Assembly: GCA_025558095.1 (NCBI GenBank)
Contig: JAIVFI010000002.1
Coordinates: forward strand, 372,001 to 436,000
DNA length: 64,000 nucleotides
Direction: 5' to 3'
Source of the DNA: Hyaloraphidium curvatum SAG 235-1
Taxonomy: Eukaryota > Fungi > Monoblepharomycota
Below the pieces are notes generated by a model that was given only the letters and a program-made list of their open reading frames with translations, was not told the origin of the DNA and made no database searches. Positions 21,196-60,300 of the stretch are shown piece by piece; the stretch's first letter is position 1, and every line of letters starts with the position of its first letter. The position numbers and the translations under genes were made by a program.

Positions 21196-21377
21196 CGCGA
21201 CCGCGGTAGCACAACGCGTACAGAGTTTCCGCTGCTAAAAGCTAAGCTAAGAACTCCTCGCTGCTAAAGAGCCATTTATGGCCGTTTCGGCAAAGCTTGC
21301 CCACCCTACCCGCGCGCGCGCTCCACACCGGACAGCCCCGAATTGGAATCGCCCGTGCACCCCGAGCTCGAGAACAA

Positions 21378-22442
21378 ATGCCGCCAATCCGGTGGAGAAG
21401 GTTCATATTTGTTGCTGCCTTCCACCTGGCGTGCTCTAATGGAGCAAACAGAGTCGTCCGCTCGACACGGTCTCCTGTCGGAACCACTCGCGCCCTGCCT
21501 GACGCTTTGCGGTGGAGGATCATTTGCAAATGGGCAGACGGCCAGCCAAAGGCGCAGATCGCACGGGAGCTTTTGGTTTCTCGTCGGAGCGTGGCCCGCG
21601 TCGTTACCTGCTTCACGACGTGGGGCTGCGTGACGAGCCCGCTCACCGGCCGCCGAGGACGCAAACGCCTTCTGAGCCCGGGCCAGGAGCAGCAAGTCGT
21701 AGACTTTGTCGTGGCAAACAACACTCTCTACCTGGATCAGATCGTCTCGCGCGTCTCGGATGCCTCTGGAGTACAGTTCTCCGTCAGTGCTCTTTGGGAA
21801 CTCCTCCACCGGAACGGAATCACCCGGAAGGTCGTCGAGACGGCGGCAAAGGAGCGCTGCGAAGCACAGCGCATTGATTTCCAGCTGAGGATATCAAAGT
21901 ACGACCCGCGAATGATCGTAGCCGTGGACGAATCAGGGTACAACGAGAACACGCTTATCCGCAAGTACGGCTGGGCTCCCATTGGGCTACGTGCGATTGC
22001 TTCCGTTCCGTTTGTGAGGGGCCAAAAGTACAGCATCCTGGCCGCTATGGACATGAAGGGCTACGTTGCTTGGCGTTTTCAAGAGGGGTCAATCAAAGGG
22101 GCTGACTTTTGCGACTTTCTCGAGAAGGACCTCCTCCCACGCATTCCAACGTTCAGTGTCATCCTTCTGGACAATGCAAGCATCCACAAGGATCCGCGCA
22201 TTCGTCCTCTCTGCGAGAGATTCGGAGTTTTCCTCGAGTTCCTGTCACCATACTCCCCGGACTTTGACCCCATTGAGCACTCCTTTTTTCACCTCAAGCA
22301 GCTCATGAGGAGGTACGAGGACTTTGTCAGGACGTTTCCAGACGCAAAGGACGCTATCAACTTCATGTGCACTCAGATTACTGAGGCCATGGCACGGGCT
22401 TGCTTCAAAGGGGCGGGATACCGCATTGACTTTGACTGCTAA
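21378..22442 (+). CDS. IS630/Tc1-mariner DD34E transposase, apparently intact
   Basis: HTH N-terminus, VAVDESG, ILLDNASIH, SPYSPDFDPIE with exactly 34 aa between D and E; probable in-frame 60-nt intron 21392-21451. Confidence 0.92.
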   Translation: MPPIRWRRFIFVAAFHLACSNGANRVVRSTRSPVGTTRALPDALRWRIICKWADGQPKAQIARELLVSRRSVARVVTCFTTWGCVTSPLTGRRGRKRLLSPGQEQQVVDFVVANNTLYLDQIVSRVSDASGVQFSVSALWELLHRNGITRKVVETAAKERCEAQRIDFQLRISKYDPRMIVAVDESGYNENTLIRKYGWAPIGLRAIASVPFVRGQKYSILAAMDMKGYVAWRFQEGSIKGADFCDFLEKDLLPRIPTFSVILLDNASIHKDPRIRPLCERFGVFLEFLSPYSPDFDPIEHSFFHLKQLMRRYEDFVRTFPDAKDAINFMCTQITEAMARACFKGAGYRIDFDC

Positions 22443-22504
22443 ACGAGTACAGGGCTACTAATGTAACGTTGCGATTACTTGCAAATAACAGATGTTAAAT
22501 TCGT

Positions 22505-24931
22505 TCACGAGTTGCTGTACAGATCGGACCCGACCATGACAACATCTTTGGTGCGCTTCCCAGGGAGGCAGTACAAAGCAATGTGCCCTTCAACGGCGGG
22601 AACGTCGATGAGCTTCTGCTGGGGAGAAAGCATCTCGAAGGGGAGGAGGTGAAAGGTCATGGTCTTTTCCCCTGCAGGGTCCTGCCACTCAGCCTTGTGG
22701 TGATCTTTGAACTGGGGACACTTCGTGACGATGCTCCAGACGGTCTCGTCCCCAAGTAGTCTCTCCTTGGGCCACAACGGAGCTGATGCGGCAATCTCGC
22801 CGTCATCGTTGCGCTTGCTCAGCGAAACGGAGTAGGTCGGCTTGAAGTTGCCCATGGGGCCGTCGGGCGTAAAGGCCATAGGCTCAGTCACGCCTGCAAT
22901 ATGGAGATGCATCCAGATGGGTGTGAAAGACGCTGTACGCACGGTCGCACCTGGCGAGGGGCCCGCGTTGGGGGCAGCGAGGGGGCTCATGAACGGGTTC
23001 CCGTCATTCTGTTCTCGGGGGGCACCACCAGTGCCCCAGTCCGGCTTGGACATGACAGGAACGGTCCTGGCAAGACCTTGCTTCCGAAGCGATGCCCGAA
23101 TGGCGTCGAGAGCCGTCGTTCCGCCCGGGGGGTTTTCGAAGTCGACGTAGTCGGGGTCGGTCGGGGTCAAGCCTTTCTTTTCCGTCTCTATCTGAATTCG
23201 GTGTAAGCGTACAAGACAACGCGGTAAAGTAACGATACATACGGCCATCCGTACCCAATGATGGGAGTCCTGAAGGTCGAACTGGCCGTGGCACATGCCG
23301 TGCATCAGGAAACAGCGTGGGCCGTGAACCCGGGTCATCAGGTCCCCGACGTGCGTGTGGCCCCTCGTCTTGCACACGGGAATGTAGAGCTTGTTGAGCT
23401 TAGACAAACGATCGGGCAGGCTGGATGTTGTGCCAGCTGTTCCAACTTCTCTCCCACCAGTGACCTGCTCGGGCCACGGAAGTCTCGTCGACATAGACAT
23501 AACCAGCAAAGACGCCGAATCCTACCACACCGGTCGACGTCCCCAAGGGGTTGGCAGTCTGTGTGGCAGCCTGGACGGCGGCGGGGTCGAACAGGGGCGG
23601 GGCACCGAGAGCGCCGGCCTGGGACAAGCCAAACGTGATGCCCTTGACCTCCACAATGTCGATTCCCGGAATGAGCTGACGCCGGCGCAGCAAGTTACGA
23701 AGCGCCTCGTCATCGGTAACGTGGCAGACATGCACGTCTTTGGGCTTTGTCGAGTTATGGTTGCCCGAGATGTAGGTGAGCAGAGGTGCCCCATCCGAGC
23801 GGTGCGGAACGAATACGCCGATGTGCCAATTGGGGCTATGGATCTGCTTGGCAGCTTGACCCAAGAACGCCGCGATGGTGATGCTGTCGATCGGCCCCAG
23901 ATCGAGCTGGACGGTGGACATCGTAGAGCCCATCATCTTGGTGCCAGTTACAGCCGCAAACTTGACTGGAACATCGCATGTGAGCGTAATGCAAGAAAAA
24001 GCGCGATTGCTGCGATTCCACACCCTCATAGACGGTAGCGAGCTCAGCCTTCTCCTTGGCCGTCAATGGCTTGGTCGGTTTCTCGTCTGCCTTCTTTCCT
24101 CCCTTCTTCCGCTTGGGCCCCCATTCGAAGTAGGCGGCCTCCACGACCACGGACGACTCGCTCGAAGGGGTGGGCGGCGGTTTGGGCAGAGCATGGGTGA
24201 TTCTGGACGGTGTGTCGTCGAGAGGTGCCGATGCCGGCTCGGATTCCTCGACAACCACGGCGGGCTTGGGTACAGTGCTCTGCGTCTGATGCTTCTTGCT
24301 CATGCGTGCTTTCTTCGGAGCCTGTTGGGAGCCATCTTCTGCGTGGTGGCTTGGGGATGGTAACGGTCGTGACGAATCACCATCCAGTGCCCACCTTTCC
24401 CTTGCTGGCAGCCCGAGCAAATCCAGCTCATGCTTTTGCCGGGCCTCTTGTTGATGCCGTTGCACCTTGTGTGCTGGTAAACCTTGCACTCGTCGCAATC
24501 GATCATGGGCTTGCCGTCGTCGAAGTCGTGCCCCTCGGCACCGCAGACGCACTTGAAATCCCAGCTCTCCGCGTCCGCGCTGTCGACGTCCTCATTGCTC
24601 GTAGTAGTGCCTTGTTTTCCTGAAGGGGAGGAGTGCTGTCAGTCCGGCTGCCAAACGGGAACCGACCTGCAGCTCGGACTGCCTCGTAGCACGTCTTGCA
24701 CACGGAGTGGTCGCCGGCCTGGAGCTTCTTCTGTCCCTTGATTCTCGTGCCGCAGACCTCGGCATTGTCACGGCTCAAGGTGATCCAGCGCAAGTAGTCG
24801 GAAGGGCGGCCGGCCTTCTGGAGCGTGGACTCGTGGGCGTCGCGCTGCCTGCAGTTCCTGTTGCAGACGACGCAATTGTCACATAGAGCGCATGAAATCT
24901 GAAACTTCTCCGGGTCCTGCGGAGGCGCCAT
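22505..24931 (-). CDS. PHD-finger protein (multi-exon cargo gene)
   Basis: WDFKCVCG...MIDCDECKVYQHTRC...WICSGC is a C4HC3 PHD finger; extra N-terminal Cys cluster; long unknown C-terminal exons. Confidence 0.7.
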
Positions 24932-25019
24932 TGCCTTCTTCCGTGGGCTGGGGGGGGGGGCAGATTCGAGGACGTTTGGTGCCTGAGTTTTGCGCGCGCG
25001 CGGGTGGGCAAGCTTTGGA

Positions 25020-25232
25020 GAAAGGGCAATAAGGCTGAACAAGCCGTCAAGCGGCTAGCCCTGACAAACATTTCGCCTATGCACGATGCAGGAACAGCGA
25101 AATCAGTCTGCCGGGGTAAAGGTTTGTGGAGGCCACGATCAACGCAGAAGGGCGAAAGTGCCCGATCAGCGAAGTACGGGCAAAGAGGCGAGAGAATAAA
25201 TAAGAGGGAGAGGAGAGGAGGGATGGAGGCGT
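25020..25232 (-). ncRNA. candidate omegaRNA region of Fanzor A
   Basis: Directly 3' of the Fanzor stop; hairpins atttcgc/gcgaaat, tgca/tgca, agccg/cggct; function inferred from Fanzor locus architecture. Confidence 0.3.
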
Positions 25233-28200
25233 TCACGACTTGGAAGGAGCCGCACGACGCCGGCGGGCCGCGGTGTCCCCGCTGCCTTCCGAGCCTCGAG
25301 CGCGACCCCCAGAGCGTCCGCCGGGCATGTAGTCCCCATCTCCGTCATCATCAGGAGCACCCCGAGCCTGCCCACGAGCACGACGAGGAGCGGCGGCATC
25401 CTGGGCGGGTTCGACGGCCGTCGGGCTCGCGATCTCCTGGGATTCGGCAGCCCGCAGTCCGCGGGAAGACGGGTGCGCACGGGCTCCCGACCCCGGCTTG
25501 AAGCCGAGCGGCCGCGCGCCGTCGAACAGGAGCTGGTGCCAGAACAGGTAGAGCATGTTCCGCGCGCTGTTGATGTCCCGGTTCCAGCGCACGTGGCAGG
25601 TCCGGCACTCCTTGACGCGCCACGTCTTGCCCACGAGCTGGCCCGATTTGCACCGGTTGCACTTCTGGCTGCTGCCGTGCTCGTGGATCGAGACGCCGAC
25701 GACGACCTTCATGAACTCGCGACGGTAGGTGATGAGGGGCGCGGAGGCGTGGCCTTGGCTGTTGTGGGGGAAGACAGCAGCGCCCACAGCGGCCAGAAGC
25801 GTGCCGATCCGGCAGGTCAGGGGATCCTTGGCACCTTGCCGCACCATCCAGAAGAGCACCTGGCGGGAGCGGAAGTAGCGCGCGAGTCGGCGCCGCCTGG
25901 GCATCAACGAAGAGTGAGCGAGGTCAAGGTGGTCTGCAAGCCGCGAGACTTGCCTCAGTTCCTCCTGACCGTAGAAGGTCGTGACCTCCCGAAGATCCGC
26001 GAGAACGTAGTCGGCGTACTCGGCGTAGCCCTTGTACGTCAGAGACCGCGAAGTCGGGATCCTGGACTGCCACTCGGCGATCGAGATCCCCGTCCGCGCG
26101 AGCGTCGTCTCCTTGAGCATCCGCTGCAGCTTTGCCTCGTCGCGGACGAAGCCAGACTTGTGGCGGTACAGCGAGGTCGAAGCACGGCGCTCGATCTCCC
26201 AGCTTCCGCGGGTGCCGAAGCCCGTAATCCCCCAGATGCGGTCCCGCGCGGCGTCGGTGCCCACGCCGAAGAACTCCTTGAGGTGGCGACGGTGCTTCTT
26301 CTCCTCCGATTTGGAGCGTTTGCGGTACGTGGGAGGAGGGGAGCGCGCGGCGGGGTGGCTGCGGCGAACGGGATCATCGAACTGCGAGTACGGGCGGAGC
26401 TGGTGGAGCGGGTTGTTGCACACCGGCGGGCGACCCTCCCGGGCGGCCTTGGCGGTCTCGTCGCAGTAGTGCTGCCGGCGCAGCTCCTTGATCCGGCCAG
26501 TGGAGAGGAGGGTCTTGGGCTGCTCCCTGATGATGATGTACCGCGTGATTTTGCCGTCGGGGTGCCGCACGACGATCGCGCTGTCGAGATCGGACAGGCG
26601 CCGGTTGGCGTTGGCGTACCCGTTGCGCGGGTCGAGCAGCTTCAGCCCAAGCTTCTTGCCGATGGTGAGGTCACCGGCGAGGAACTCTTTCCTGTTCGGG
26701 TCGAAACCGGCCGGCGTGCAGTTGAGCCTCCCCGCGTTGTAGCCGATCCGCTCCTTGATCTCCTCGCGCCCCTGCGGAGTGTCCAGCGCGTAGCGCGTGG
26801 CCGCATCGCCGAGCCGATGCTTCTTTGGCTTCGCGGGCTGTCCTGCGCTTGGGACGCGGGCACCCCTCGAAGGCGGCTGCGCCGGCTGCCCTGCACCCGG
26901 TATACGAGCACCCCTCGAAGGCTGCCCGGCGCCTGCGCTGCCCGCCTGCTTGCCGCCGCCCGCCTGCTTGCCGCCGTTGTCCGACTGCCCGCTTCCAGAG
27001 CCGCTCCGATTCGTCTCGCCCCGCTTGCGCACGATAACGATCTCGTACGTAGTCGTGAGGAGGTGCAGGCTGGCGCCGTCGTAGCTGAAGTGCCGAGGGA
27101 TCGACTTGGTCGTGGCCGTCTCGTGGAAGGTGAGCGCCGAGACGCCCTTGCGCGAGTCCTTGCTCCCCGTCTTGCGCCGCTTGCCGGTCCGGAAGATCTC
27201 GTTGAGCCAATACCCCGGGTCCTGCTTCATGACCGCGACCTCGGGCAAGGCGTGCGCACCCGCCCTGGAATCTGTCAGGATCGAGCTATGCACAGAGAAA
27301 CAATGAACTCACTTGACCAAAGCCTCGTGAATGGCGGTCATGGAGAAGGGCATCATCCGAGGACGGAAGCGGATCTCCGTCAGCAAGGTACCGGGAGACT
27401 TGGATGCGATCCAGGCGGGTGCCGCCGGTCCAGCCTTGGCCGCGTCCTTGCGCGAAGCTTTTGAAGCGGCCGTCGCCTCGACAGCAGCGGCGTGAACGCT
27501 GGCGATGCCTTCCCGGAGTTCGCGCTCGCGCTCAAAGAAAGGATCGTCCTCGGCCGCATCTTCGTCTTCCGCGACGCGGTCTTTGGAAAGGTGCTTCTCG
27601 AGCTGCACCGGCTCGCCGCTGCGTGTACCGTGCAGAGCCGCCGTGCGCATCCGGACGGAGCGCTCTCTCTCGAAAAAGTCATCGTCCGCGCCGTCGTCAG
27701 CTTCCTCCACGACCAGGGGCTCCGAGAACGGCGAAGCGGAAAACTTGGTGTACCCGTGATCGGGCCCCCGGTGCGGCACAGGTACCGCGGCCCGCTTCTC
27801 CGCCCGCCTCTGCTCGCCCGGCCGCGGCACGGCTTTGCCGTGCTCCCAGTACACCCTCTTCAGCTTGAAAAGGCGGTCGATCCGCTGCGCCTCCGTCTCG
27901 GGCTTGCGGCGCCGCTGCGAGGCGAGCTGGTGGGCATCCGTACCCGCCTGCGGAGCATCGACCGGCGCGCCGACGTCCATAGCGTCTCCGGCAGCCAGCG
28001 TTCCACCGACATTGGACGGACCGCCAGCACCGGATGACAGTCCTTCCCGCGCGCGGAAGAGCTCGGGGTGGTTCTCCCGATTCCTTGCCTCGATCCGGCC
28101 GCGTTGCACCTTGAGCTTCAGCTTCACCGCGTAGAAGGGATGAACGCTGGCTGACCAGTCCTTTTCCTCCAGCCCCGCAATGCCGAGCACCTTGGGGTCC

Positions 28201-31200
28201 GTCTCGCCGGCCTCGCGCCTGCGGATGAGCTCCCGCACCTCCCCTTCGGTCGACCGGCGCAGATGAGGCGGCACGTAGAGCTGGCCCTCGCGCGCGTTGT
28301 GTGCGCGCATGGCGTCGTTCGTGGGGAAGAAATAGGGCAGGTAGACGAAGGGGAGGTGGTGCTGGAAGCAATAGTCCATCGAAGCACGGATCTTGTAGTT
28401 GGCTTTGGTGATGGCCAGCGCCACGGCCTTCAGCTCCGGGTCGCCAAAGGTCCCCTTGAAGCGCCCCTCCGTATACTCCTGGAAGTGCTCATAGCTCTCC
28501 TTCTGGTCGTCAGTCCACACCCTTTCCTGCGTGATCCGCGGCGGGAACGAATGTTTGATCGGCGGCAGCCCCTTGGCCTCGCGCTCCAGATGGCCCCAGA
28601 CCACGTACGTCGGCGGGGGCTTGGGGATGCCTTTGCCAGAGGTCTTGCCGTTCGCACCGGAAAGCTGCGACCCCTGGACGTGCTCGGGATAGCAGCCGCG
28701 AAGCTCCTGGACGCAGTAAGCACCGAGCAGCGAAGCGTCGATGCTCATCTCGTAGGCGCGGTCTTTGCGAGGCTGCAGGAGGATCGACTCGCGCACCGCG
28801 GGGTCGACCTGCGCAAAGACCGCGCGGCGGAGGCAGTGTACGGCGGGATTCTGCGATTCGGCGTCCCTGACCCAGAAACGGGCCTCTGAGTGAACACGAC
28901 GAAAGCTCTTGTCGTCCGAGAGATAGTGCCCAAGGCCACCAGGGCGCTTCCAGAGCGGGAGAAGGAGGTCGTAATGCCGGTACCCGCACAGCAAGAGGCA
29001 CAGCACGGGATCACCCTCGCGCTTCTCGGCAGCGCCTTCGACCGCGATCTCCCGAGCGACCTCGAAGTGCAGACCGTGCTCGCCGTTTACCACGCAGATC
29101 CTGACGCGCAGCTCCTTGACCAGGGACTGCAGCGCGAAGTGATCGCCCCAGTAGAGGGCCTGGTCCGTCCCTTCGACCGCGGGTGCGTCCAGCCGCATAC
29201 GCTCCGCCAGCTGCGCGACGATGCGCTCCGGAACCAACTCCGGCGCCTCGAACTGCTCCAACCCGAGGCCCGCGGCCCAGCGAACCTCGTGCATGGGGTC
29301 GATCGTCTCGTCCAGCCTCGCGAAGAGCTCTTGCCGACGTTGCGGGCTCGTTGCCTCGTCCTCGAGCTCCCGACGCTCTTCTGCGGTGAGCTCAGGCGGC
29401 CCAAGATGCCCTTGCCGAAGTCCGTCGAGCAGGCACTGCACGAAAAAGTGCGCGGGAGTTCCAGGCTGCCGCGCTTCGCCCATCACCTCGTCCGCCACCA
29501 CGGAGCGCAGCTCGCGAACGGGACGACGGGCCCCCGAAATGCGGCAACCTTCCGACACCGATTCGAACAGGCAGTCCCCCTTGTCCGGCATGGTCTTGAT
29601 TTTCGCGAGCACCGCACCAACCACAAGGTTGCTCGCCCCGCGCGAATCGATAAGCTCCTGAATCTTGTCGATCTGCCGCACGAGCTCTCGGGCGCGAACC
29701 TTCAAAGTCTCGGCGGTGTGCATGTCGTAGGCGCTCAGCTGGCCCCGCATCACGACCAGGGAATGCACCTTCCCGCGCACAATGTCCTGGTCGATGGGCG
29801 ACAGAGGGTGCCGGCACGCGAGCTTGAGCAGCGCCGGAAGCTCTTCCTTCTCAAAGGCCTGGATTTGGAGGGCACAGTCGGAAAGGCTGGCCGCCGCGTG
29901 AACGTCGATGTTGAAGTGCCGAAGCGCCGAGAGCTCCTTGGCAGTCAGCTCGGGCCGGCAAAGGTCTGCGATCGGCTCGCCGCCGTGGGCAAAGTCCACG
30001 ATCTTGTCCGCCACCTTGGACGCCTTCTTCGAGGGCAGCGCAACGTCCTCGAGCTTGTAGGCGCGCTTGACGAACGCCTTCTCGTGCGAAACGAAGTTGA
30101 CGGCGATCTTGGTCTTGAAGTTCGCCTTGGCCATGGAAACCATGTCCATCACGGCGGTCTCGACGATGCCTTTGTAGGTGAGCTTGAGCCGCGGTAGGTG
30201 CGGGACGAGGATGCGCTTGGCGGCAGCCAACATGACCACGACGAGAAGCTTGTTCTTCCTCTTCCTCTCCGCGACCTCCTCTGCGGTCTCCTTCCGCTTC
30301 CCCGCATCCTTGGTGGCTGCCTCACCCTGCTGCGCGGGCGCGGGCGCTGCGGCGGAGCCCTCAGCGCCCTCGGGGTCGATCGTGATCTCGGCGGCCGCGG
30401 CGTCGACCTCCATTCCCTCGCGCGACTCCTCGTCCAGCGAATCGAGCATTGTCACGTCCTTGTCGCCGCCCGAGTCCTGCGGCAGCTGCATGGACATCAG
30501 CGCGTCCTCGAACGGCTCGTCCACGTCGATGGCGTCGGCGCTTTCGTCCGGCCCGCTCCCCCCGGCTGCATCATCGCAGCCTTCCTCCCCATCCCCAGCA
30601 TCCCCAGCATCCGCCCGCGCCGACTCGCGCAAATGCCCGGCCTGCTCGTACAGCTCCTCGTCGAGGCGGTCGACGTCGACCTCGGCCTCCCGGGCAAGCA
30701 GTTCCGCGGCGCACTTTCCGATCTCCTCGATCTGACGCCGGAGCTCGTCGAGGTCGGGGGGCTTCGGCACCTTGACGGATGGCGCGTTCCTCGCGTGGGC
30801 ATTGCCAAGGTTGGGCGAGACCCTGGAGCCCGTGGCCAACGACTTGACCACCGAGTAGGCGATGGCCCACAGGTTCTCAAAGTCTGCGTCGCGCAGGTCC
30901 TTGTGGAACGGCCCTATGTCGTAGTGCTTCTCGCCGTCCGGATCCATGATGAGGTGCATGGTGCAGTTGACGAGCAGAAGGACGACGATGACGATTGGGG
31001 TCCCCTCCAGCGCAGTCTTCTCGAGCACCTCGATGGTCTGCTTGGCAAGGTCGCCGTAGCTCTCGAACTGCCTCCCGTCCAGCACCACGGTCCTCTGCAT
31101 GGCCTCGCGCAACACAGCAGCCACGTCCTCTCGCCCGCGCAGGGTCTCGGTCGATCGCGCGTACCAGTTCAGCGCGCTGGTGGGACAAGAGCAGGGCCTG

Positions 31201-33805
31201 TCGACGAGGCTGGCGGCGCATATCGGGCAGGTTTCGAGGCGAAAAGGGGCAGCAGCGCCGGTCGCGGTTCCGCCGTCCGGCAGTCGGCGCCGGATAGCCT
31301 CCCGCATGATCTCGTAGGCCTTGTCCAGCGCGTCCTTGGGCATGAGGTCGCTGTGAACGAAAGGCATCAGGACGAGGTCCGCGCGAGACGAGGAAAAAAC
31401 CTTACTCGATCCGCATGTGCGCATGCTCCGCGGTTACGTGGGTGACGTAGTTGAGCGGCGAGTCGAGCACCTGCTCGCACCCCGGGCAGCCAAAGTGGCG
31501 GCGCTTGTAGTGTCCCGCCAACCACTTCTCCGCCTCCTCCTTCGACTTGAACCCCCTCGCAACCTCGTGCGTCGGGCTGTCGCCGCAGCAGAAGCAGCGC
31601 ATGTTGGCCCAGGGCTCCAGCATGGCGACTGTCCCGCGCGTGACCCCGACCCAGCGCTCCAGGTAGCGATCGAGCGCGGTCCGCTGCTGGCTTCCCGCTT
31701 GTCCCAGGTCGTCGTACCCGAGCAGAGCAAGCATCACGGTGAGCTCTTGCGCGCCCTGGTACACCGCCTTGGACGCCAGCTCGTGCAGCTGCACGGGGAT
31801 GGGCCTGTCGCCGGTGATCGCGATCCCGGCCGCAGCGAAGGCCTCCTCGATGGTTTGCGCCTGCGGAGCGCGTTGCATCAAGGCGATGCACCGGGATCCC
31901 AGCTACGAGCCAGACCCACCGGCACGAATGCGCTACGTGCCCGGAAGTCGAGGCCCGCTGCGCGCGCCACCGAGCCGCCGACATCGACAAACTCCTTCCA
32001 AAACGGCACTATCTCCGCGTGTACAGCGGGTCTCCACTCGACCTTTCCGGACCCCTGCGCCTCAACCGGCACGCGAACGTTGACGTAGAGGGTCAGGAGC
32101 GAGAGGTCGTTCTCGGAGAGCCGCCGCACTAGCTCCCCGGTTACTCGCAGTCGTATGTCGATTCCGATCTTGGCGAGACCATTGCGGATGCTCAGCGCCA
32201 GATTCTTGTCCTTGGCCACGGGGTGCTTCATGCCTCCCAGGATCGTCTCGACGAGCAAGATACCCCGGTTCGGTGCTGCGCCCTCGGGCTCCTCGTCCTC
32301 GCGCTTCAGGGCCAACTTGAACCGCGCCAGCGTGTTGTGCATATTCTCCATCATGCTGTCCCTTTCCGCGATGCTTGCGGTCACCTTCCGAGAAAGGAGC
32401 AGCTCCTCCACCTGCTTGAAGAACGCGCGGGACACATCCGACGAAGCGTTGACGAGCTCAGGGACGAGGTGAAGATCAAAGTAGTAGTCCTTGATGTTCA
32501 GGAGCGGTAAGGCCGGCAAATGCTTGTCGGCGGCCGCGAAGAGCACCTTCAGAACCCCTTGCTCGTTCCTGCCACCGCTTATGATGCGCGCCAGCGCTTT
32601 CGCGCTCGAATGATCCCTGCTGTCCGCGATGAGGTCGTCGACGGTATAGGGAAGGTGGTCGTCCTTCTCGCCGAACACTGCAGAACGGGGCACGTCGGGA
32701 GCAGGATCCGTGCACGCGCCAGTCGCGACGGCAGCCCGTGCCCCGGCGGCTCGAAGCAAATGCTCTGCGACCTTCGGGTGAATGGCTTCCAGGAAGTCCG
32801 CGAGTCTCCCATTGTGGGCAAGCTGGCCGACGATGCAGAGGTGGAAGTTGACGAACTCGTCGGGCAGCTCTCCGTTCCACTTCTTGCGCTGGGCGTCCGA
32901 GTACTTCTTGCGCTGGGCGTCCGAGTACCTTCCAATGACGTCGCCGACGGGCGAAAACGGCTGCGCGAGAGTCAGCGCGTGTCCCAGGAAGTCCGATTTG
33001 AAAGCAGGCGGAGCCGTCTGCCCCAAGGCGATAACGTGCTTGTTCAACGTCGAGTTGAACTTCTTCCCGAGTCGGCACCCCGAGGACACTTCGACAAACT
33101 CCTTCAGGGTCCAGGGGCGCGCGAAAGCGCTTTCTTCGATCCCCAAGAGCGACGCAGCCTGTGATGAGGACGCGAGAGGGATGAAAGAGTCAGAATTCGG
33201 CAGGGTGATAGGAAACGAGGGAGGCGTCTGAACTCACGGAGCGTTCAATCTCCTCATGTGAAAACGAGCTCAATGAAGGCAGATCCTTTTCCGCAGTAAC
33301 GTTTGACGGCGCAGCCTGCGCTCGACGGGCGGGGACCGGTGCTGCAGCGCCCGGCGCGTTCAGAGAAAAGGCATCCCCGGGATGCGTGGCGCCCCTGCCC
33401 ACCGTGGCCGCCGTTGTCGCGTTGCACATTGCTCGGACAGGGTCCTGCGTGATGCTGAGTGCCGTCTTCGCACATTCTGACGCGTTTGGGCGCGCCCGTT
33501 CGACGGCCTCGTTTTCTCTGTGAGGAGCGATCGTGCCACGAATCCGTGCGGCCTCTTCTTCGCTCAACCTCACACAGTGCCGAAAAGTCGGCGCCAAATC
33601 CATCGCCGCAATTTCGCCAATCGCCCTTTCTATCGATCTGACCAGCTCCTGGACCGTGGACGGACAGTCCTTGCGGACCCTGCTCTTGATCATCCAGAAC
33701 ACGTGCTCAGCCGGGTCAAACTCGGGCGATCGCGGCCTCAAATAGACAATATCCAGGCCGTTCCTGCGAGCTATCTCCTGGACTGCTTGGTAGGCTTTGC
33801 CAGTT
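25233..33805 (-). CDS. giant Fanzor A (ZnF + OTU insertion + RuvC), spliced in frame to the transposase C-terminus
   Basis: RuvC-I GFDPNRK, RuvC-II IHEHGSSQKCNRC, ZnF/RuvC-III CRTCHVRWNRDINSARN; introns 33159-33237, 31861-31919, 31351-31405, 27265-27312 and 25897-25953 join all ORFs in frame (~2,750 codons). Confidence 0.85.
28960..29600 (-). other. OTU cysteine protease/deubiquitinase domain inside Fanzor A
   Basis: MPDKGDCLFESVS (Cys box), YWGDHFALQSL (WG motif), LLLCGYRHYDLL (His box). Confidence 0.8.
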
Positions 33806-34558
33806 CCTTTTCGACGCAAGATCGGGACCCGTCGGGCCTCCGGACGGTCCTCCAGGGGGAGCCGTGGAAGCCCGCGTTGTCGGCGATGACCTTGACGGGA
33901 CCAGTGCTATCACCCGCCTTGATGGACTCGAGGAAGGCGCAGAATCGTTCGGTGGTCATGTTGCCCTCGTAGATCACATAGGACACTATGTTGCCGCCAA
34001 AGTTGCCCTCCCTCGGCGCCATGGAGATGCACAGGCAGAGGAACAGCTTCTTCCCGCGGCCGGAAGGCAATTCGATGACAGCACGCTCTCCCTCGGGAGC
34101 ATAGCCGTAGGGAAGGGGCTCGTTGATGTGGAACGACGACTCGTCGAGGGCGAGCAGGTTGCCCGACGCGGCTGCAGCCTGAATGGCCTCGTTGAAGTCG
34201 AGATGGCGCTGCGGCTGCTCCAGTCGCTCCACGTTCCTGATAGTTAGCCGCTTCCGAGTAATCTTTCGCGCCCGAAGCAGCCGCGAGACGTGCTGCTGAC
34301 AGATGGAGACGCCGAACTCCTCCTTCACCGCCTTCGCCAGCTCCTTCTGCGTGATGACAACCTTGCCCGTCGCCATCTTGACGATGAAATCGACGACTTC
34401 AACTGTCGCTTTCCGGGGTCGCACCGAGGATCGTAGCCGTCCCGAAGGTAGTTGCGAACCATTCTCGGCGAGACGTCAACAACGCCGCCGATTTCCGCGA
34501 CGCTCATCTGAGTACGCTGCCGCAAGCGCTGAGCAACAAGGCGCTTCTCAATGTGCAT
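33500..34558 (-). pseudogene. IS630-like transposase module of element A (two frameshifts)
   Basis: HTH, LALDESSF, VIADNAGFH, SPEFDPAE; 16-nt deletion at ~34423 and 1-nt deletion at ~33806 relative to copy B. Confidence 0.85.
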
Positions 34559-34697
34559 CGTTGGTTTTGGGCTTTTAGGAGCAAAGGGATGGAACGACCT
34601 TGCGGAAATGAAATTTAAGGGACTTTGCGCCAGGCGTCGGGGTTTGCAGCTCTACGGGACCGTAAACACACGCGACTTACGCCTCCTCATCACGAAA

Positions 34698-37652: not shown

Positions 37653-38102
37653 CGCGTCTCGAAGAAAAGCTAGAAGTTCGACGCGTTATTTGTTTTCATC
37701 ACGCCGGGCGCTGAACCAATGCTCGCGTAAAGGAGCCAGACGTTGTCACCGGCGCGCCCGCGGATGATGCTCCCGGACCGCCTACGACCGTGGCTCTTGG
37801 GTTAAGGTCCCGGAAAAACCGCCAACGACCCTCGCGGGGTGGGCCACGAATGTGGCCGCGGGTCACCAGCGACGACCCACGACCTTTCTGATGCACTTGA
37901 CGGGCTCAGCACGCACGTGCCGACTCGGATGCTGATTGGTCTGTGGTTGGAACGAGGCCCGTGGTGGATGGCTCTTCAGTGCAATTCGCGAGGCGGCACC
38001 GGCGCGGTGCCGTAACTCAATCGGGACTACACTCGGTTCAGTACCCCCTCTCCTTTTTCGGGTCTTAAAGTGTGGGAATCGAACGAATTCCTTGTATTGC
38101 AA

Positions 38103-42694: not shown

Positions 42695-42798
42695 TGCCTC
42701 CGACCTCGACCCCTGCCCAAGTCACCGCATCGAGGTCCGTTCCCTCGACCGTCGACGAGGATCAATCGAGCTCTAACATTGTTTGCAATAGCAGTGAC

Positions 42799-45700
42799 AT
42801 GGGGTCGAAACGAGGGCGAACATCGGACAAGGGGTCGGACAGCGACGATCCCGGCGAAGGGTCTTCGGCACACCCACCTGCTCCCCGGAAGCGCGCCAAC
42901 CAAGCCGGCGAATCCGAGGTCGTCGATGCTGCAGCTCAGCTTCCCGTGGGCGTGGCCGTGCCGCCCAACTCCGAGTCCGACGACACGGAGCTCGCATCGT
43001 CGCTGGTGGCCGCCGTGTCGCAGAATGAGACCGAGTCGGACGACTCCCGGCCCAAGGAGGCGATTCCCCAGAAGCGGCCCCGCAAGGACGGCGACAAGGG
43101 CAAGGAGCAGGCCGAACCCGTCCCGTCGTCTCCGAAAGGCCCCGAGCCCAAGAAGGCGAAGAAGAAGGGCTACGATGCCGCCGCCGCCACTGCCCAGGCG
43201 GCCCTGGCGCCCGAACATTCTGCCCACCTCGAGCAAGCCAACGTGCCCACCGGTTGCCCCGCCCTGCTTTGCGGAAACACTGATCATTGGGATGCCGGTC
43301 ACGGCGACGGGAGCGGCTGCCAGTTGTTTCCCTGCGGGAGCCTCTACCACAACACCAAGGAACATCTGAAGCGGCCTGATCCCCGCATGCCTTTCATGTG
43401 CCCGCACTGCGACCCGCTTAACACGCTCGACCACGACGAAGGCTTCCACTCGGTCTGCGGCACGTGTGGCGAGCGTGACCATGGCGACATCGCCCACGCG
43501 CACCCTTGCGACGCCCTCGTGTGTACCGGGAGGATCTGGGCGTCGCGTTCAAAGGAGGAACTGTGGGAGATGGTCGCAAATGGCTTCCTGTCCGAGAACG
43601 TGCTGTACTCGTGGTTCCCCCTGATCTCGTACGAGGACCACGTGCTCGAGCACAAGCATACCTTCGTTTCCGTGGAGGAGCCCAACGGTTGCCGGCCTTT
43701 CCTCGTTCACTGCGGCTCGCTGGGCCACACGCGCGCGGCGCACGGCGGGGTAGAGCCTCTGTACTGTTCGCAGTGCGGATCGTTTGAGCACCGGGCCAAG
43801 GAGCACGTGCACTACATGTCTGCGTGCCACACGAGCGCCAACGGCTGCGGACAAAGGGGTCACTCGAAGGTTACCGCCGGGGCCTGCGTGCTCAACATCA
43901 ACGATCTGAAGAAGCTCACGCCCAAGGAGGCGCTGGACGAGCTCATGGGCCCGCAGTCTGCCCAGAGGACCGTTGTCATGGCCTTCCAAAAGTTACTGAG
44001 GTACGGGGACCGGACGGCGCGGGAACCCGCGAGCCCAGAGGAGGAACTAGCTGCCACGCTCTACGAGGTCATCGAGGATGCCATCGGGCGGTTCACGAAG
44101 CTCTCGTTCGAGATGTCTCTGTTCATGGACCTCTTCTTCAAGTACGTGCGCGACTTGCGGCTACTGGGAGGGAACCTTAGGTACCCTCACCTGGACATGA
44201 GCCTCGGCCTGAACGCCTTCTTCGCCGTGGCGGCGCCACTCCACGGCGACGAAGACCACGCCGATACTCTGGTGCCGCTTTTGAACACGTTCCGCGACAC
44301 GGAATGGCTGGGCTGCGTCAAACGAGCTGCTCTTCACGGCTACAAGCGGACGTCACGCGTTGGCCTCGACCAGATCATGCGGACCGCGTCACAAGGCTAC
44401 GTGACGGCTGCCATGAACTCGGTGAAGGAAAACCTGCACGATCGGGTGCGCGCGTGGACGATCTGCAGGCTGCGCATCCCGCTGCACAAGCACGGTCGGT
44501 TTGGCCCCCAGCAACCAAGCCAGGGCCGTACGCTCACGAAGGGCGAGACCACGGCCATCGCGACCCACTTTGTCAACAGCCTGAAGTTCTGGGATCCGAG
44601 GGAGCACCCCGCCAACACGAACCGGCCCTTCACGCTGCCAAACAACGAGCTCTACGACAAGGTCATGACCGACCCGCTGCTCCTGGAGATCGCGACGTCT
44701 ACACCGAGCTGCGCGACGACCTGCTCAAGGGTCTCTACCTCAACCCGTACTGGGTCGCGTACCACTGGCAGAGGTTCTTCGACGTCCTGTTCCGCATCCA
44801 GCGGGAGCACGAGGAGCTGCGCAAGAAGCTGGTGCAGTGGACGGAGAACTTGAGCAAGAGCGAGAGGAAGTTCGCTCTCCGCAACTTTCCCTACAACCAC
44901 AAGCTCGTGAAGCCCTTCAACGTCCTCCCGCGCTTCTCGACCGAAGCCAAGCACATCCTCATCGACCGCATCGCTCTTCACCAGCTCATCCAGGTGGCGC
45001 AGCGGCGGCTCGGCCAGGAGCCCACCTCGATGGCCGACTACCTCGCCGCGGAAGCCGAGGATCCGGAGCACTGGTGGCGTATGTTCTTCCGGCCGGAGAA
45101 GGTCAACACCGGCGGCGCCGAGAATCCATCGAGGCACTTCGACTACTCCTTCTCCACCAACGCCGTGCAGGCCTCGATCACGGTTCTCGTGCGGAAGCCG
45201 TCGGAGGAGCAGCCCGGCACGTCGTTCTCCGACATCAAGATCCCCGGCATGTCCGTTGCCGGGCTCGACCCCGGCAGAAAAGACATCCTCACGGTTTCGA
45301 CGGGGCTCTCGACGCCGGGGGACGACAAGCACCACGGCCACAGCAAAGCCGTCAGCGTCTCCGCGGGCGAGTACTACCACCTCGCCCGGTACAAGAACAA
45401 CACGTGGAAAGCAAACCAGCGCAAGAAGCGGCACCCGTCCATCCTTGAGATCGAGCGCGACACGCCCGTGGCCAAGGCCTCCACGGTCGCGGACACCAAG
45501 CTGTACATCCACCACTGTCTCGAGCACCTCTCCACGATCGTCGGCTTCTACGGGACAAAGGTCCACCGGCGGTCTCGGTTCGACCGGTACATCGGCAAGC
45601 ACACCGCGCAGGAAGCCGTTGCCGAGAAGGTCATCAAGGGCTGCGGCGTCGAAGCGGAGCGCCTTATACTTGCGTTCGGCAAGGCCAGGTTCCGTCACAA

Positions 45701-46111
45701 CATGCGCGGCGGCGTAACGACTCCAGGGTCGGCACTGGCGTGGCTGAAGCGCATCCTGCGCCGCCGCGGCGTCACGGTCACCGAGGACGTGGAGGAAGAC
45801 ATGACGTCGCAGATCTGCGCGGCGTGCTGGGAAAAGGTCGGCAAACAACACCCGAAGAACGGGCACTACCAGATCAAGGATTGCAGAAATCCGGATTGTT
45901 TGATCAAGTGCTGGAATCGGTTCGTTGCCTTGGGTTCTCGTCACGCAGCTCCTGACACTTCGGCCGCAGGGACGTCATGGCTGCCACCAACATCCGCACC
46001 ATTGCCTTGTCGGAGATCCTCCACGGAGGCAGGCCTCCCGTGTTCTACTCGACGCGGAGGGCCAACTTCGAGGGACGCGATCCGGCGGGCGCGGGTGTCA
46101 TCGTCAACTAG
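42799..46111 (+). CDS. Fanzor1 (TnpB-like RuvC nuclease) C with Cys/His-rich N-terminus; one frameshift at ~44693
   Basis: RuvC-I VAGLDPGRKDI, RuvC-II VEEDMTSQICAAC, ZnF CRNPDC, RuvC-III WNR|DVMAATNI across intron 45920-45969; LILAFG. Confidence 0.9.
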
Positions 46112-54072: not shown

Positions 54073-54128
54073 CGGGAATGGTTCACCTCGTCACTAGCTT
54101 ATGGTGGTCTGTGTTAGCCTAACTCATA

Positions 54129-54384
54129 CACAGTTTCCTACGGAACCCTTATCCATCCTCGGAAACTTTTCGAGTGCTAAAAGAGGTCCCTAAAAGGGTA
54201 GATCAAGCCATGATCACGATCTGTGATTCGGCTGCCCAGACGCGAACGTCCGGGAGTGTTGGTGAAGATGTCCGTTCACCAGAGCCCGGCGAGCGATCCC
54301 GATCGCGTCGCACAAGGTAAGGTGTCCGGAGAGGAAGGAAGCAATAAATAGTGTCCAGGAGGCACCCGATGAAGGTAGCGCCCT
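54129..54384 (-). ncRNA. candidate omegaRNA of Fanzor B
   Basis: Between the stop and the putative element end; minus-strand hairpins tggtgaa/ttcacca, cccggacg-TTCG-cgtctggg, agcc..atcac/gtgat..ggct, ctcg/cgag. Confidence 0.45.
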
Positions 54385-57300: not shown

Positions 57301-60300
57301 CTTGTGCCGGAGGTGGGCCGGGGCGCGGATCTGGCCGGCGAGCGAGTTGTGCTTCTCCATGTCCGCACCGATGGGCACCAGGTAGGGGAGGATCTCGAAA
57401 GGCATATGGTGGCGATTGCAAAAGTCCATGCACCCGTATGCCTCGAAGTTGGCCTTGGTGATCGCGATGGCCTTGAGCTTGAGCGGGTCGCTGGCGTGGA
57501 GGCGCTCGAAGTCCTCCTTGCCATGCTTCTTGAACCACTCGAACTTGGACCTGTCCTCGGGCGACCAGTTCCTTTCCTGCGACAGCTTCGGCGGGAAGTA
57601 GTTGTGGAACGCCGGCAGACCCTGCTGGATTCGCAGAAGGTGTGTCCAGACGACCCAAGCAGGCCGGGGCTTGGGGACACGGCGCGCGGAGAAGGGGCTG
57701 CGCGAGTCGGCGATCTGGTCCGCGGATCTCGGGTCCGTAGGCATCCCGAATCCGTTCTCCGCAATAGGCAAGCGCGAGGAGGACGTCCGTGCTCGCCTCG
57801 TAAGCACGCTCCTTGCGATTCTGGTGCAAAATCGCGTCCCTGACGCTCGGAGCAATGTCGGCAAAGATGGAGCGGCGGAGGCACGGAATTGGAGCTCGGT
57901 TGCCGCCCCGCAGCCAGTACCTTCCCTCCTGCAACGCGTGCTCGAAGGATGCGACGTCCGACACGAACAGCCCGAGGCCCTCGGCGCGCTTCCACCCCGG
58001 CTTCAGCATGCCGTAGCGGCCTTCCGGCTCGGCAAGCAAGCAAACAACCATCCTCTTGCCCCGCTCCTTTTCCGGCGTCGCATCCCTGCCGGCCTTGTCC
58101 ACGATGACCTCGAAAAGGTTAGTATCCGACCTGACGATGCAGAAATCCATCGACAGCGACCCGGCGAGGATGCGGAGCGCCCCATCGTCTGCGGCAAAGA
58201 GCGCGGCGTCCGTCTTGCCGTCAAATTCCGGGTCATCCGTGCGAGACCGTCGCATCCTCGAAGCGAGCCTCTGCACCACACTGTCGGGCACCTCCGTGGC
58301 TGATGCAAAAGTCTCGAGGTTCAGGTTTGCCGCCCACTGCACGATCTCGTCCGCCGTCGATCCGCTGGCCTTGATCTTGCCGATGAGCTTCTCCAGATAC
58401 TCGTGCGCAGCCGTGCCCTTGCTGCGGCAGCCGCGCTCGAACTCATCAGCGAGGCCCGCGCGCACCTTCTTGGCCGTGAACGGCCCTCTCGGATGGCCGG
58501 CGCCGGAAAGAGCGAGAGCGATGCCTCCAAACACGTGGTTGGGACCGTCGGGCAGTTCGTGCAAGGCGGCCATGACGGCGCCCGGAGGAAGCGCTGCAGG
58601 CGGGGGGTCGATGATCGAGCTGCGCAGTTCATCCACCTCGTTCCACAGTTCCGTCGCTTCCGCCTTTTCCGGCGGATCTACCTCACTGCGCTCCTCCTTG
58701 AACACGAACAGGATGTCAAGAACCCTTTGGAGGCGGCGCACGTGGATGTCGACGATCTCGTTTTCGGCCCGGGTCCGCGCCGGCAGCGCCACGAGCTTCC
58801 GCAGCGCGGGAAGCTGCCGAGTCCGGAAGTCATCGACGAACACGCGCGCGGTGGGGACGTTGGTGACGAGGGAGTCGACATCCAGGTCCGAGTCGATGCG
58901 GAGGGACCTGTAGTCGACCTCGCCGAGGTCGGATCGCCCAAAGTTTTCCAGGGGATCCTTGCCGTTGAAGAACTCGATGGCGTACTTGACGAGCTTGCCG
59001 CCCTTCTTCGTCGGAAGCTTGACGGCGTGGAGCGCGAGCACTTGACGGATGTAGCGCTCGACCTGCTTCATGAATGTTCCGGAGATCTTGGTGGCAAAGT
59101 TGGTCCGCATCTGCTCCACAGCCCCCAACAGAGCTTCCTCGATAACCTTGTCGAACTGGAGCATGGCATCCTTCAGCCCCTCCTCGGGAATCTCGGCGTC
59201 AAAGACGGCGATTATGAGCTTCAAAAGGAGTTTGCGGAGCCGCTCGCGCTCCTTTGCCTCCTCCTCCGACTCCTTGGGACGAGGAGCACCGGCATCGGCA
59301 TCCCCCGACGCAGCCGCCTCTGCAGTCGTGGGGTTCTCGGCCGCGGGGACTTCGCCCTCCTGCACCGCGCCAACGTTGACCTCCTCGGCGTCGAGCAAGT
59401 GGTCCGCGTCGACGGCCTCCCCAGCATCAGCGCCTCCATCCGCCGCCGGATCCGCCGTCATCATATCAAACGTCTCGGCGAGGAGGTCGGCGTCCGATGC
59501 GGCGTCGTGACCTCCATTTCATCCCCGCTTTCGGAACCGTCGTCCGCGTCCGCCCCGGTGCTCGGCTCGATCTCGAGGCGGCCCGCGTCGTCGAAGAGCC
59601 CGGCCACGGTCGCCGGATCGTCCATCTCCGCCCCTGCCATTTCCACGTCCCCAGCCTCTTCTCCGTCCGAGGCGGGCTCCGCACCAGCTTCCGCCGAATG
59701 TCCGAGCGTTCCGTCGAGTCCGAGCTCCTGGCACTTCTGCGTCATATCTGGCTGCTTCGGGATGTTGCGCAGCACGGGGGCGTTGCGCGGGCGCGCGGAA
59801 CCAAGGTTTGGCGAAGGATCCTTGCCCGTCGCCCTAGCCTTGATCACGGAGTACGAAAACCTGAACAAGCAGTCCATGTCGGCCATTGCAAGGTCCTTGT
59901 GGATCCCGGGCACCTCGTACTTCTCCTCCCCGACGGGGTCCTGGATCGCGTGCAGCGTGAGCGCAGAGAGCAGGGCAGTCATGATGACAATCGGCGTGCC
60001 CTCCACGATGGTTTCCTCCAGGACCTTGAGAATGTCGTCCGCCATCTTGCTGTGCGCCTTGAACTCGCCCACGTCCAGCACGATGGTCATCATCTTCACC
60101 ATCTGGACCGCAATCTCGATCTCCTCCTCGCCCTTATTCCGCTGCCGTGCACTTTCGATCAGACGATGCGCAAAGATAAGCAGCTCCGGATGACAGGTGC
60201 ACGCCTTCTTGGCCGCCGTCGGCTTGAAGTGGCACAGCGGGCACTCCTGCCCCTTCTGCACCGGCGGCACGGGCGGTCCCAGATCGCGCCCGACCTCGAG

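Follow-up and report, generated by a model that had tools for sequence, protein, structure and literature searches.

A single Fanzor1-like gene of about 2,300-2,570 codons, situated in an IS630/Tc1-type element of the fungus Hyaloraphidium curvatum, carries within its chain a divergent OTU-type deubiquitinase domain with a full predicted catalytic set. This OTU segment and an intact RuvC triad share one spliced, transcribed reading frame. The gene lies in the window, by which we mean the whole 64,000-nt stretch analysed here (contig JAIVFI010000002.1, positions 372,001 to 436,000); all coordinates are positions in the window, and all features are on its minus strand unless marked (+).

Three GT-AG introns, all in frame, are predicted at 31919-31861, 31405-31351 and 27312-27265, and an RNA-type contig of 8480 nt, starting at 33189, skips exactly the 59, 55 and 48 nt of these introns. 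This splicing evidence consists of one contig from one run, the RNA type of which is inferred and is fitted by the spliced joints. The first transcribed exon seen (31920..33189, with an open frame from 33158) encodes a domain of unknown type, and is followed by an exon with Cys/His zinc-finger-like motifs (31406..31860) and by the 4038-nt exon that carries the OTU domain (27313..31350), which has no internal joint. The OTU frame ends with a stop at 27309, 16 codons short of the RuvC frame, and the two are joined only via the 48-nt intron (27265..27312), which holds that stop and is missing in a paralogous element 29 kb away. Beyond it lie WED-like motifs and the RuvC/zinc-finger core (25233..27264). 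Since the RNA contig skips the introns and leaves the 4038-nt exon unjoined, the OTU segment is exonic and in frame with RuvC, and is not spliced out of the mRNA, an outcome that the preliminary description had allowed for. The joining of the two exons in the RNA contig also rules out the OTU frame as a separate gene, and a second gene nested by insertion is ruled out by an OTU exon that shows neither frame break nor joint.

Within the RuvC part, a further GC-AG intron is predicted at 25953-25897; at the matching position, the paralog has an intron that is equally long (57 nt) but of the GT-AG type. The predicted GC-AG intron lies outside the stretch aligned to the RNA contig. With this intron removed, the spliced model runs for 2568 codons without a stop, while translation from the first in-frame ATG (32354) would give a protein of ~2,300 aa. 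This ATG lies 835 nt downstream of the RNA contig start, after two out-of-frame ATGs, and coding similarity to the paralog extends upstream of it. Homology searches on the gene were made exon by exon.

The OTU-fold cysteine protease domain occupies 28950..29624 (about residues 601-826 of ORF1), as placed by HMM, Atlas, motif and model evidence. Its three motifs lie where the preliminary description had put them, in a single 1371-aa open frame (31424-27309): DKGDCLF starts at 29585, YWGD at 29153 and RHYD at 28979. The complete Cys-His-Asp set that had been claimed is present in the sequence, as Cys618 (29573-29571), His817 (28976-28974) and, two residues further on, Asp819 (28970-28968); together with the Trp-Gly pair (29150-29145), the Cys loop, Trp-Gly loop and His-x-Asp/Asn follow one another in the order typical of OTU domains. 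The spacing, which had also been called OTU-like, is so in one part only: Trp and His are 58 residues apart (49-78 in homologs), whereas Cys and Trp are separated by 141 (57-85 in homologs). The extra length in this Cys-to-Trp segment (29190..29460) corresponds to an inserted helical stretch of ~60-80 aa. Such a lobe would be compatible with activity, because active Legionella Lot deubiquitinases have long helical lobes at the same position (PMC7690952).

Several lines of sequence comparison converge on the assignment. An OTU HMM built from 11 independent OTUs, with the query excluded, scores 13.3 bits against the frame (the best of 2000 shuffles reaches 9.0), and the ordered three-motif pattern, although defined post hoc from the sequence already known, recurs in 0 of 200,000 shuffles. 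An ESM-Atlas feature search, which uses the unfolded sequence alone, ranks OTU clusters first (0.92, 185 shared features). The Pfam OTU profile (PF02338) matches with E=7e-4, but at 20.5 bits the match falls under the curated cut-off of 23.3; in the genome scan with PF02338 the Fanzor-borne OTU scores 16.1 bits. Alignment to five host OTUs with hhalign gives probabilities of 12-15%, covering the Cys-loop part only, and a PDB sequence search with the OTU piece returned no match. The segment is confirmed as a divergent OTU domain whose catalytic set is, by prediction, complete.

The residue at -3 relative to Cys618 is Lys, with Asp absent, and the Glu after Trp-Gly is also absent. Together with the long insertion near the ubiquitin site, these departures would suit an alternative in which the fold matters and catalysis does not, the domain acting as a structural spacer or ubiquitin-binding module with leftover or low-activity residues. 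Against this, two host OTU genes, L047 and L048, likewise have neither the -3 Asp nor the Glu after Trp-Gly, yet keep Cys and His. These two genes (GDCLF / GD type) are also the ones that resemble the Fanzor OTU motifs most.

Structure prediction is in line with the motif evidence. A single-sequence AlphaFold model of the segment gave no reliable fold (pLDDT 36). The model used for comparison was built from an 11-row alignment with all three motifs in register and OTU rows included, chosen over two MAFFT alignments that misplaced the Trp-Gly loop out of register; it has a pLDDT of 78.5 and a pTM of 0.74. Its best structural match is the Wolbachia OTU 6w9o (Z 13.5, rmsd 3.1 over 138 aa), followed by OTUD1/3, yeast Otu1/2 and the nairovirus OTU (Z 11-13), and nearly all of the 33 matches with Z>=5 are OTU-type deubiquitinases. 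The top Foldseek and VIA matches are all OTU as well; giant-virus OTU clusters are among the best, with a Pandoravirus OTU as the best Foldseek match (E 3.8e-7, 24% identity). The fold-match evidence is partly circular because OTU rows entered the model's alignment; the HMM scoring and the Atlas search are free of this circularity. OTU is thus the answer of the language-model, HMM and fold searches alike, where a structure or profile search could have contradicted it, and the segment is firmly predicted to adopt the OTU fold.

At the other end of the chain, the nuclease part has the layout of a Fanzor1. The published rule for this family places a Glu six residues before CxxC-x(12-18)-CxxC and an Asp 4-8 residues later (PMC10711439); here the Glu (25682) stands six residues before a CxxC..CxxC zinc finger with 14-residue spacing (25661-25596), and the final RuvC Asp (25577) follows 6 residues after the finger. 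The C-terminal part matches PF07282 with E=1.2e-7. The RuvC-I motif (Asp at 26702) keeps the catalytic Asp-Pro but reads DPN where Fanzor1 has DPG, as it also does in the paralog and in two further Fanzor families of the same genome. An insertion after RuvC-I lengthens the distance between the RuvC-I Asp and the Glu to 320 residues, outside the published range of 125-275 (PMC3627910; measured there to the TS motif). We therefore file the protein as a divergent variant of both families, given the missed PF02338 cut-off and the missed DPG fingerprint, and not as a standard member of either. On these motifs, the Fanzor part probably represents a divergent clade that would work like Fanzor1.

The preliminary description had placed the OTU domain between a REC-like region and the WED/RuvC region. 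The domain is indeed internal and N-terminal to RuvC, but the REC assignment finds no support: for the NFKTKIAV motif (30122) in the region N-terminal to the OTU domain (29640..30290; 25% identical to the paralog), hhalign against Fanzor C gives a probability of 0.14%, and PDB and Atlas searches of this region are blank, although the motif resemblance makes the label plausible by eye.

Other Fanzors occur nearby and elsewhere in the genome. The window holds a third, more ordinary Fanzor1 at about 42700-46100 (+), with a DPG motif, a weak match to GtFz1 and a long Cys/His-rich N-terminus. Two multi-copy families (L020-L029 and L030-L037) have sharp right ends and DPN; in both, RuvC-I is followed by a Cys/His insertion, and the linkers are long and rich in proline. 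The surroundings are those of a host chromosome, with ordinary intron-bearing host genes and the nuclear RNase P RNA (Rfam RF00009) at 37787-38037 (+) in the flanks, which rules out a proviral stretch.

The gene sits in a eukaryotic DNA transposon with a DDE_3 transposase upstream and a defined right end. The transposase gene, of IS630/Tc1 type (33190..34560), has two frameshifts, caused by deletions of 16 nt and 1 nt relative to the paralog. Downstream, the stop is followed by 200 nt of a tail (25033..25232), then by an inserted, TA-flanked, multi-copy Tc1/IS630-type element of 3.76 kb (21277..25032), and finally by the distal 56 nt of the tail with the right terminus and a TA (21219..21276). 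The terminus is common to the paralog (54127-54138), the two elements ending in the same TA-flanked 12-mer; a left end was not found for the OTU-Fanzor element. Once the insert is skipped, the distance from stop to end is 256 nt in both paralogs, and the two tails align with a score of 114 (chance 63+-11, maximum 101) and have folding z-scores of -2.7, here for the proximal 200 nt, and -1.8. Rfam has no match for the 256-nt tail, and no intact second copy of the OTU-Fanzor tail was found elsewhere in the genome; a 76% match to its first 84 nt (G000:C33:419507-419598) may reflect a pyrimidine-rich tract only. The 256-nt tail is a probable omegaRNA.

The 3.76-kb element (25032-21277) is young, with 98-100% identical copies on contigs C7, C19 and C2, and carries a PHD-finger-like cargo gene; short derivatives of ~390 bp are present on several contigs. 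Its own TA-flanked copies on other contigs rule out a 13.4-kb composite element with PHD cargo. The RNA contig, judged by its 8480-nt length, extends about 700 nt beyond the Fanzor stop into this insert (27200 to about 24500). With its tail split 56 nt from the end and its transposase frameshifted, the copy is probably immobile and may lack a guide of its own; it looks to have been immobilised recently, with a Fanzor-OTU frame that has stayed open and continues to be expressed.

These observations bear on the proposal, made in the preliminary description, of an RNA-guided deubiquitinase. In this scenario the omegaRNA would bring the OTU domain to a target, where ubiquitin on histones or repair factors would be removed and repair steered towards copying the element back. 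It would draw on an OTU domain and a RuvC domain with all three acidic residues in one polypeptide, on the 256-nt tail conserved in both paralogs, and on the suggestion by the authors of Ginger1 that such proteases act on DNA-repair ubiquitin (PMC2836005). However, the tail is interrupted by the insert, a search of the genome gave no other intact copy, and the terminal sequence is part of the Fanzor1 scaffold (PMC10711439); the OTU domain ends about 740 residues before RuvC-I, and the paralog has kept RuvC and the OTU fold but lost catalysis. The proposal is weakened accordingly, and we regard it as unlikely. We take a similarly sceptical view of its extension to a two-enzyme RNA-guided machine, in which a guide would deliver both the nuclease and an active deubiquitinase that edits ubiquitin at the break and so favours transposon homing.

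The paralogous element (about 63580-54127) arranges its parts in the same order. Its pseudo-OTU (57980..58594) is 36% identical to the OTU domain, and in it Cys is replaced by His, Trp-Gly by Ala-Ala, His by Arg and Asp by Gly. The OTU segment is 36-37% identical between the paralogs, as against 25% for the preceding flank. Third codon positions are 32% identical, near saturation, while second positions are 60% identical, which indicates that the split is old and that both copies have been under protein-level selection. In the tree, the stem that leads to the pair is long (2.88), and the terminal branches measure 1.09 (OTU-Fanzor copy) and 1.28 changes per site. The paralog's codons for Cys, Gly, Trp and His differ by 2-3 base changes each, too many for recent decay, given transposases that are 92% identical; recent decay of catalysis is thus ruled out. 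The transposase genes (34560-33190 and 63563-62500) are 92% identical in DNA, whereas the Fanzor parts are 25-46% identical in protein, pointing to 5' modules that were recently exchanged or homogenised by gene conversion. The transposase frameshifts differ between the two copies.

Two conclusions follow for the catalytic residues. Their retention over a branch of 1.09 changes per site, with third positions near saturation, argues for selection on catalysis in the OTU-Fanzor lineage, an argument that rests on two sequences because there is one intact copy and there are no outside relatives. Conversely, the paralog keeps the segment but has lost Cys, Trp-Gly and His, indicating that catalysis is dispensable in its lineage. 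The alternative in which only the fold matters is supported by this second point, as the paralog's domain is more conserved than its preceding flank with none of the catalytic residues left; but it would be unlikely (about 5% by a rough estimate) for Gly, Cys, Trp, Gly, His and Asp all to survive ~1 change per site through chance, and we rate this alternative as low in probability, too. That the domain is an inert passenger, a functionless fragment captured by a dying element, might be suggested by the single copy, the broken transposase and the split tail. It is at odds with the better conservation of second than of third codon positions, and with an open frame of 2568 codons that is transcribed and spliced, and appears most improbable.

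Relatives of the domain were sought more widely. Family and profile scans found no third Fanzor-borne OTU in the genome, a word search found no outside relatives of the OTU region, phmmer with 651 aa against 1.84 billion representatives returned the paralog only, and viral and metagenome contigs yielded no relative. The tree gives no resolution as to the OTU donor. As part of the explanation that we favour below, we infer that the OTU domain was captured long ago by an ancestor of both giant Fanzor1 genes.

A possible link between transposase and Fanzor raises a further alternative. An in-frame GT-AG intron candidate (33237-33159) would connect the transposase to the Fanzor exons in a frame of about 3,000 codons, which the OTU domain might cut as a polyprotein protease in the manner of tymovirus and arterivirus OTU-like enzymes; viral deubiquitinases often process polyproteins too (PMC9741609). 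Such a fusion remains a candidate only, because the RNA contig starts at 33189, inside this intron and right after the transposase stop. Furthermore, no LRGG-like site is present and no di-glycine site was found conserved between the paralogs, which leaves the self-processing suggested in the preliminary description poorly supported. The model also matches classical OTUs much better (Z 11-13.5) than TYMV PRO (6.9) or PLP2 (4.7-5.0), and a step essential to this scheme would be missing in the paralog. Polyprotein processing therefore seems very unlikely.

The explanation we favour, although tentatively and at a little under an even chance, is that of a captured deubiquitinase that protects the giant Fanzor protein or its complex from ubiquitin-driven removal. 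The OTU domain would cleave ubiquitin and, being tethered to the nuclease, would act mainly in cis, by removing chains from the Fanzor of 2,300-2,570 aa itself and from its partners in the transposon or break complex. Chain removal would prolong the life of the Fanzor and its partners against proteasomal or p97 removal. The domain would then be an accessory counter-silencing module, dispensable for DNA cutting, so that one lineage could lose the active site and yet keep the fold. The sequence offers no feature by which a cis substrate could be told from one on chromatin. Among the roles put forward in the preliminary description, the best fit is protection from degradation, as other transposon-borne deubiquitinases suggest by analogy: for those of Helitrons, it has been proposed that they keep proteins needed for transposition from being degraded by the proteasome, and transposon OTUs are still without an activity test (PMC9741609).

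Compared with known Fanzor1 proteins (SpuFz1, GtFz1 and PpFz1; Mariner/Tc1-borne, Bao and Jurka 2013), the Hyaloraphidium gene is alike in its RuvC core, which has a Glu six residues ahead of a C4 zinc finger and a final Asp, in its introns, in the DDE transposase upstream and in a TA-flanked terminus after a tail of ~250 nt. Near-identical transposases with diverged 3' parts in related elements are also seen in PGv-1/ESvi-1B (PMC3627910). It differs in its length of 2,300-2,570 codons, as published Fanzor1 proteins have 600-800 aa (PMC11423790, PMC10711439), in DPN for DPG, in the 320-residue span from RuvC-I Asp to Glu and in having an enzyme domain of another class within the chain. The notable insertion described in a Fanzor is that of PpFz1, a cyclophilin-binding domain of ~100 aa called FRI (PMC11423790, PMC10711439), and extra domains are mentioned in general terms by Jiang et al.

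Transposon proteins with OTU or Ulp1 domains have been described before, in Ginger1, Helitron and Mutator elements (PMC2836005). The OTUs of the Ginger1 transposase and of Helitron-Helentron RepHel proteins (PMC2836005, PMC9741609) resemble the present case in that a ubiquitin-family protease is fused to a DNA-cutting transposon protein and is sometimes pseudogenised; their partner, however, is a transposase or RepHel, with the protease as a C-terminal domain in Ginger1, whereas here it is an RNA-guided nuclease with an internal domain. With classical (PF02338) and Pandoravirus OTUs the domain shares the fold (Z 11-13.5), the Cys and Trp-Gly loops and His-Tyr-Asp, but identity is at most about 24%, its helical lobe is 60-80 aa longer and it stays under the Pfam cut-off. 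The lobes of Legionella LotA/B/C are 178-210 aa and their Z to the model is lower (6-9), indicating analogy and not kinship. By analogy, then, the gene resembles a transposon-borne deubiquitinase attached to a Fanzor1-like nuclease. The pairing of a Fanzor with an OTU or cysteine protease was found in no paper or database entry, in searches of a mainly open-access literature.

Fanzors, which have been described as compact single-function nucleases, can thus grow about threefold and absorb a eukaryotic signalling enzyme without losing the RuvC core. The repeated capture of ubiquitin and SUMO proteases by DNA transposons (Ginger, Helitron, Mutator) now extends to an RNA-guided nuclease. The two paralogs, one with an active-site-complete and one with an active-site-dead OTU on the same scaffold, offer a natural test pair for the role of transposon deubiquitinases, and the OTU insertion point may mark a site in Fanzors that is tolerant of fused effectors. 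A guide-targeted, active deubiquitinase, if true, would be the first RNA-targeted ubiquitin eraser in nature.
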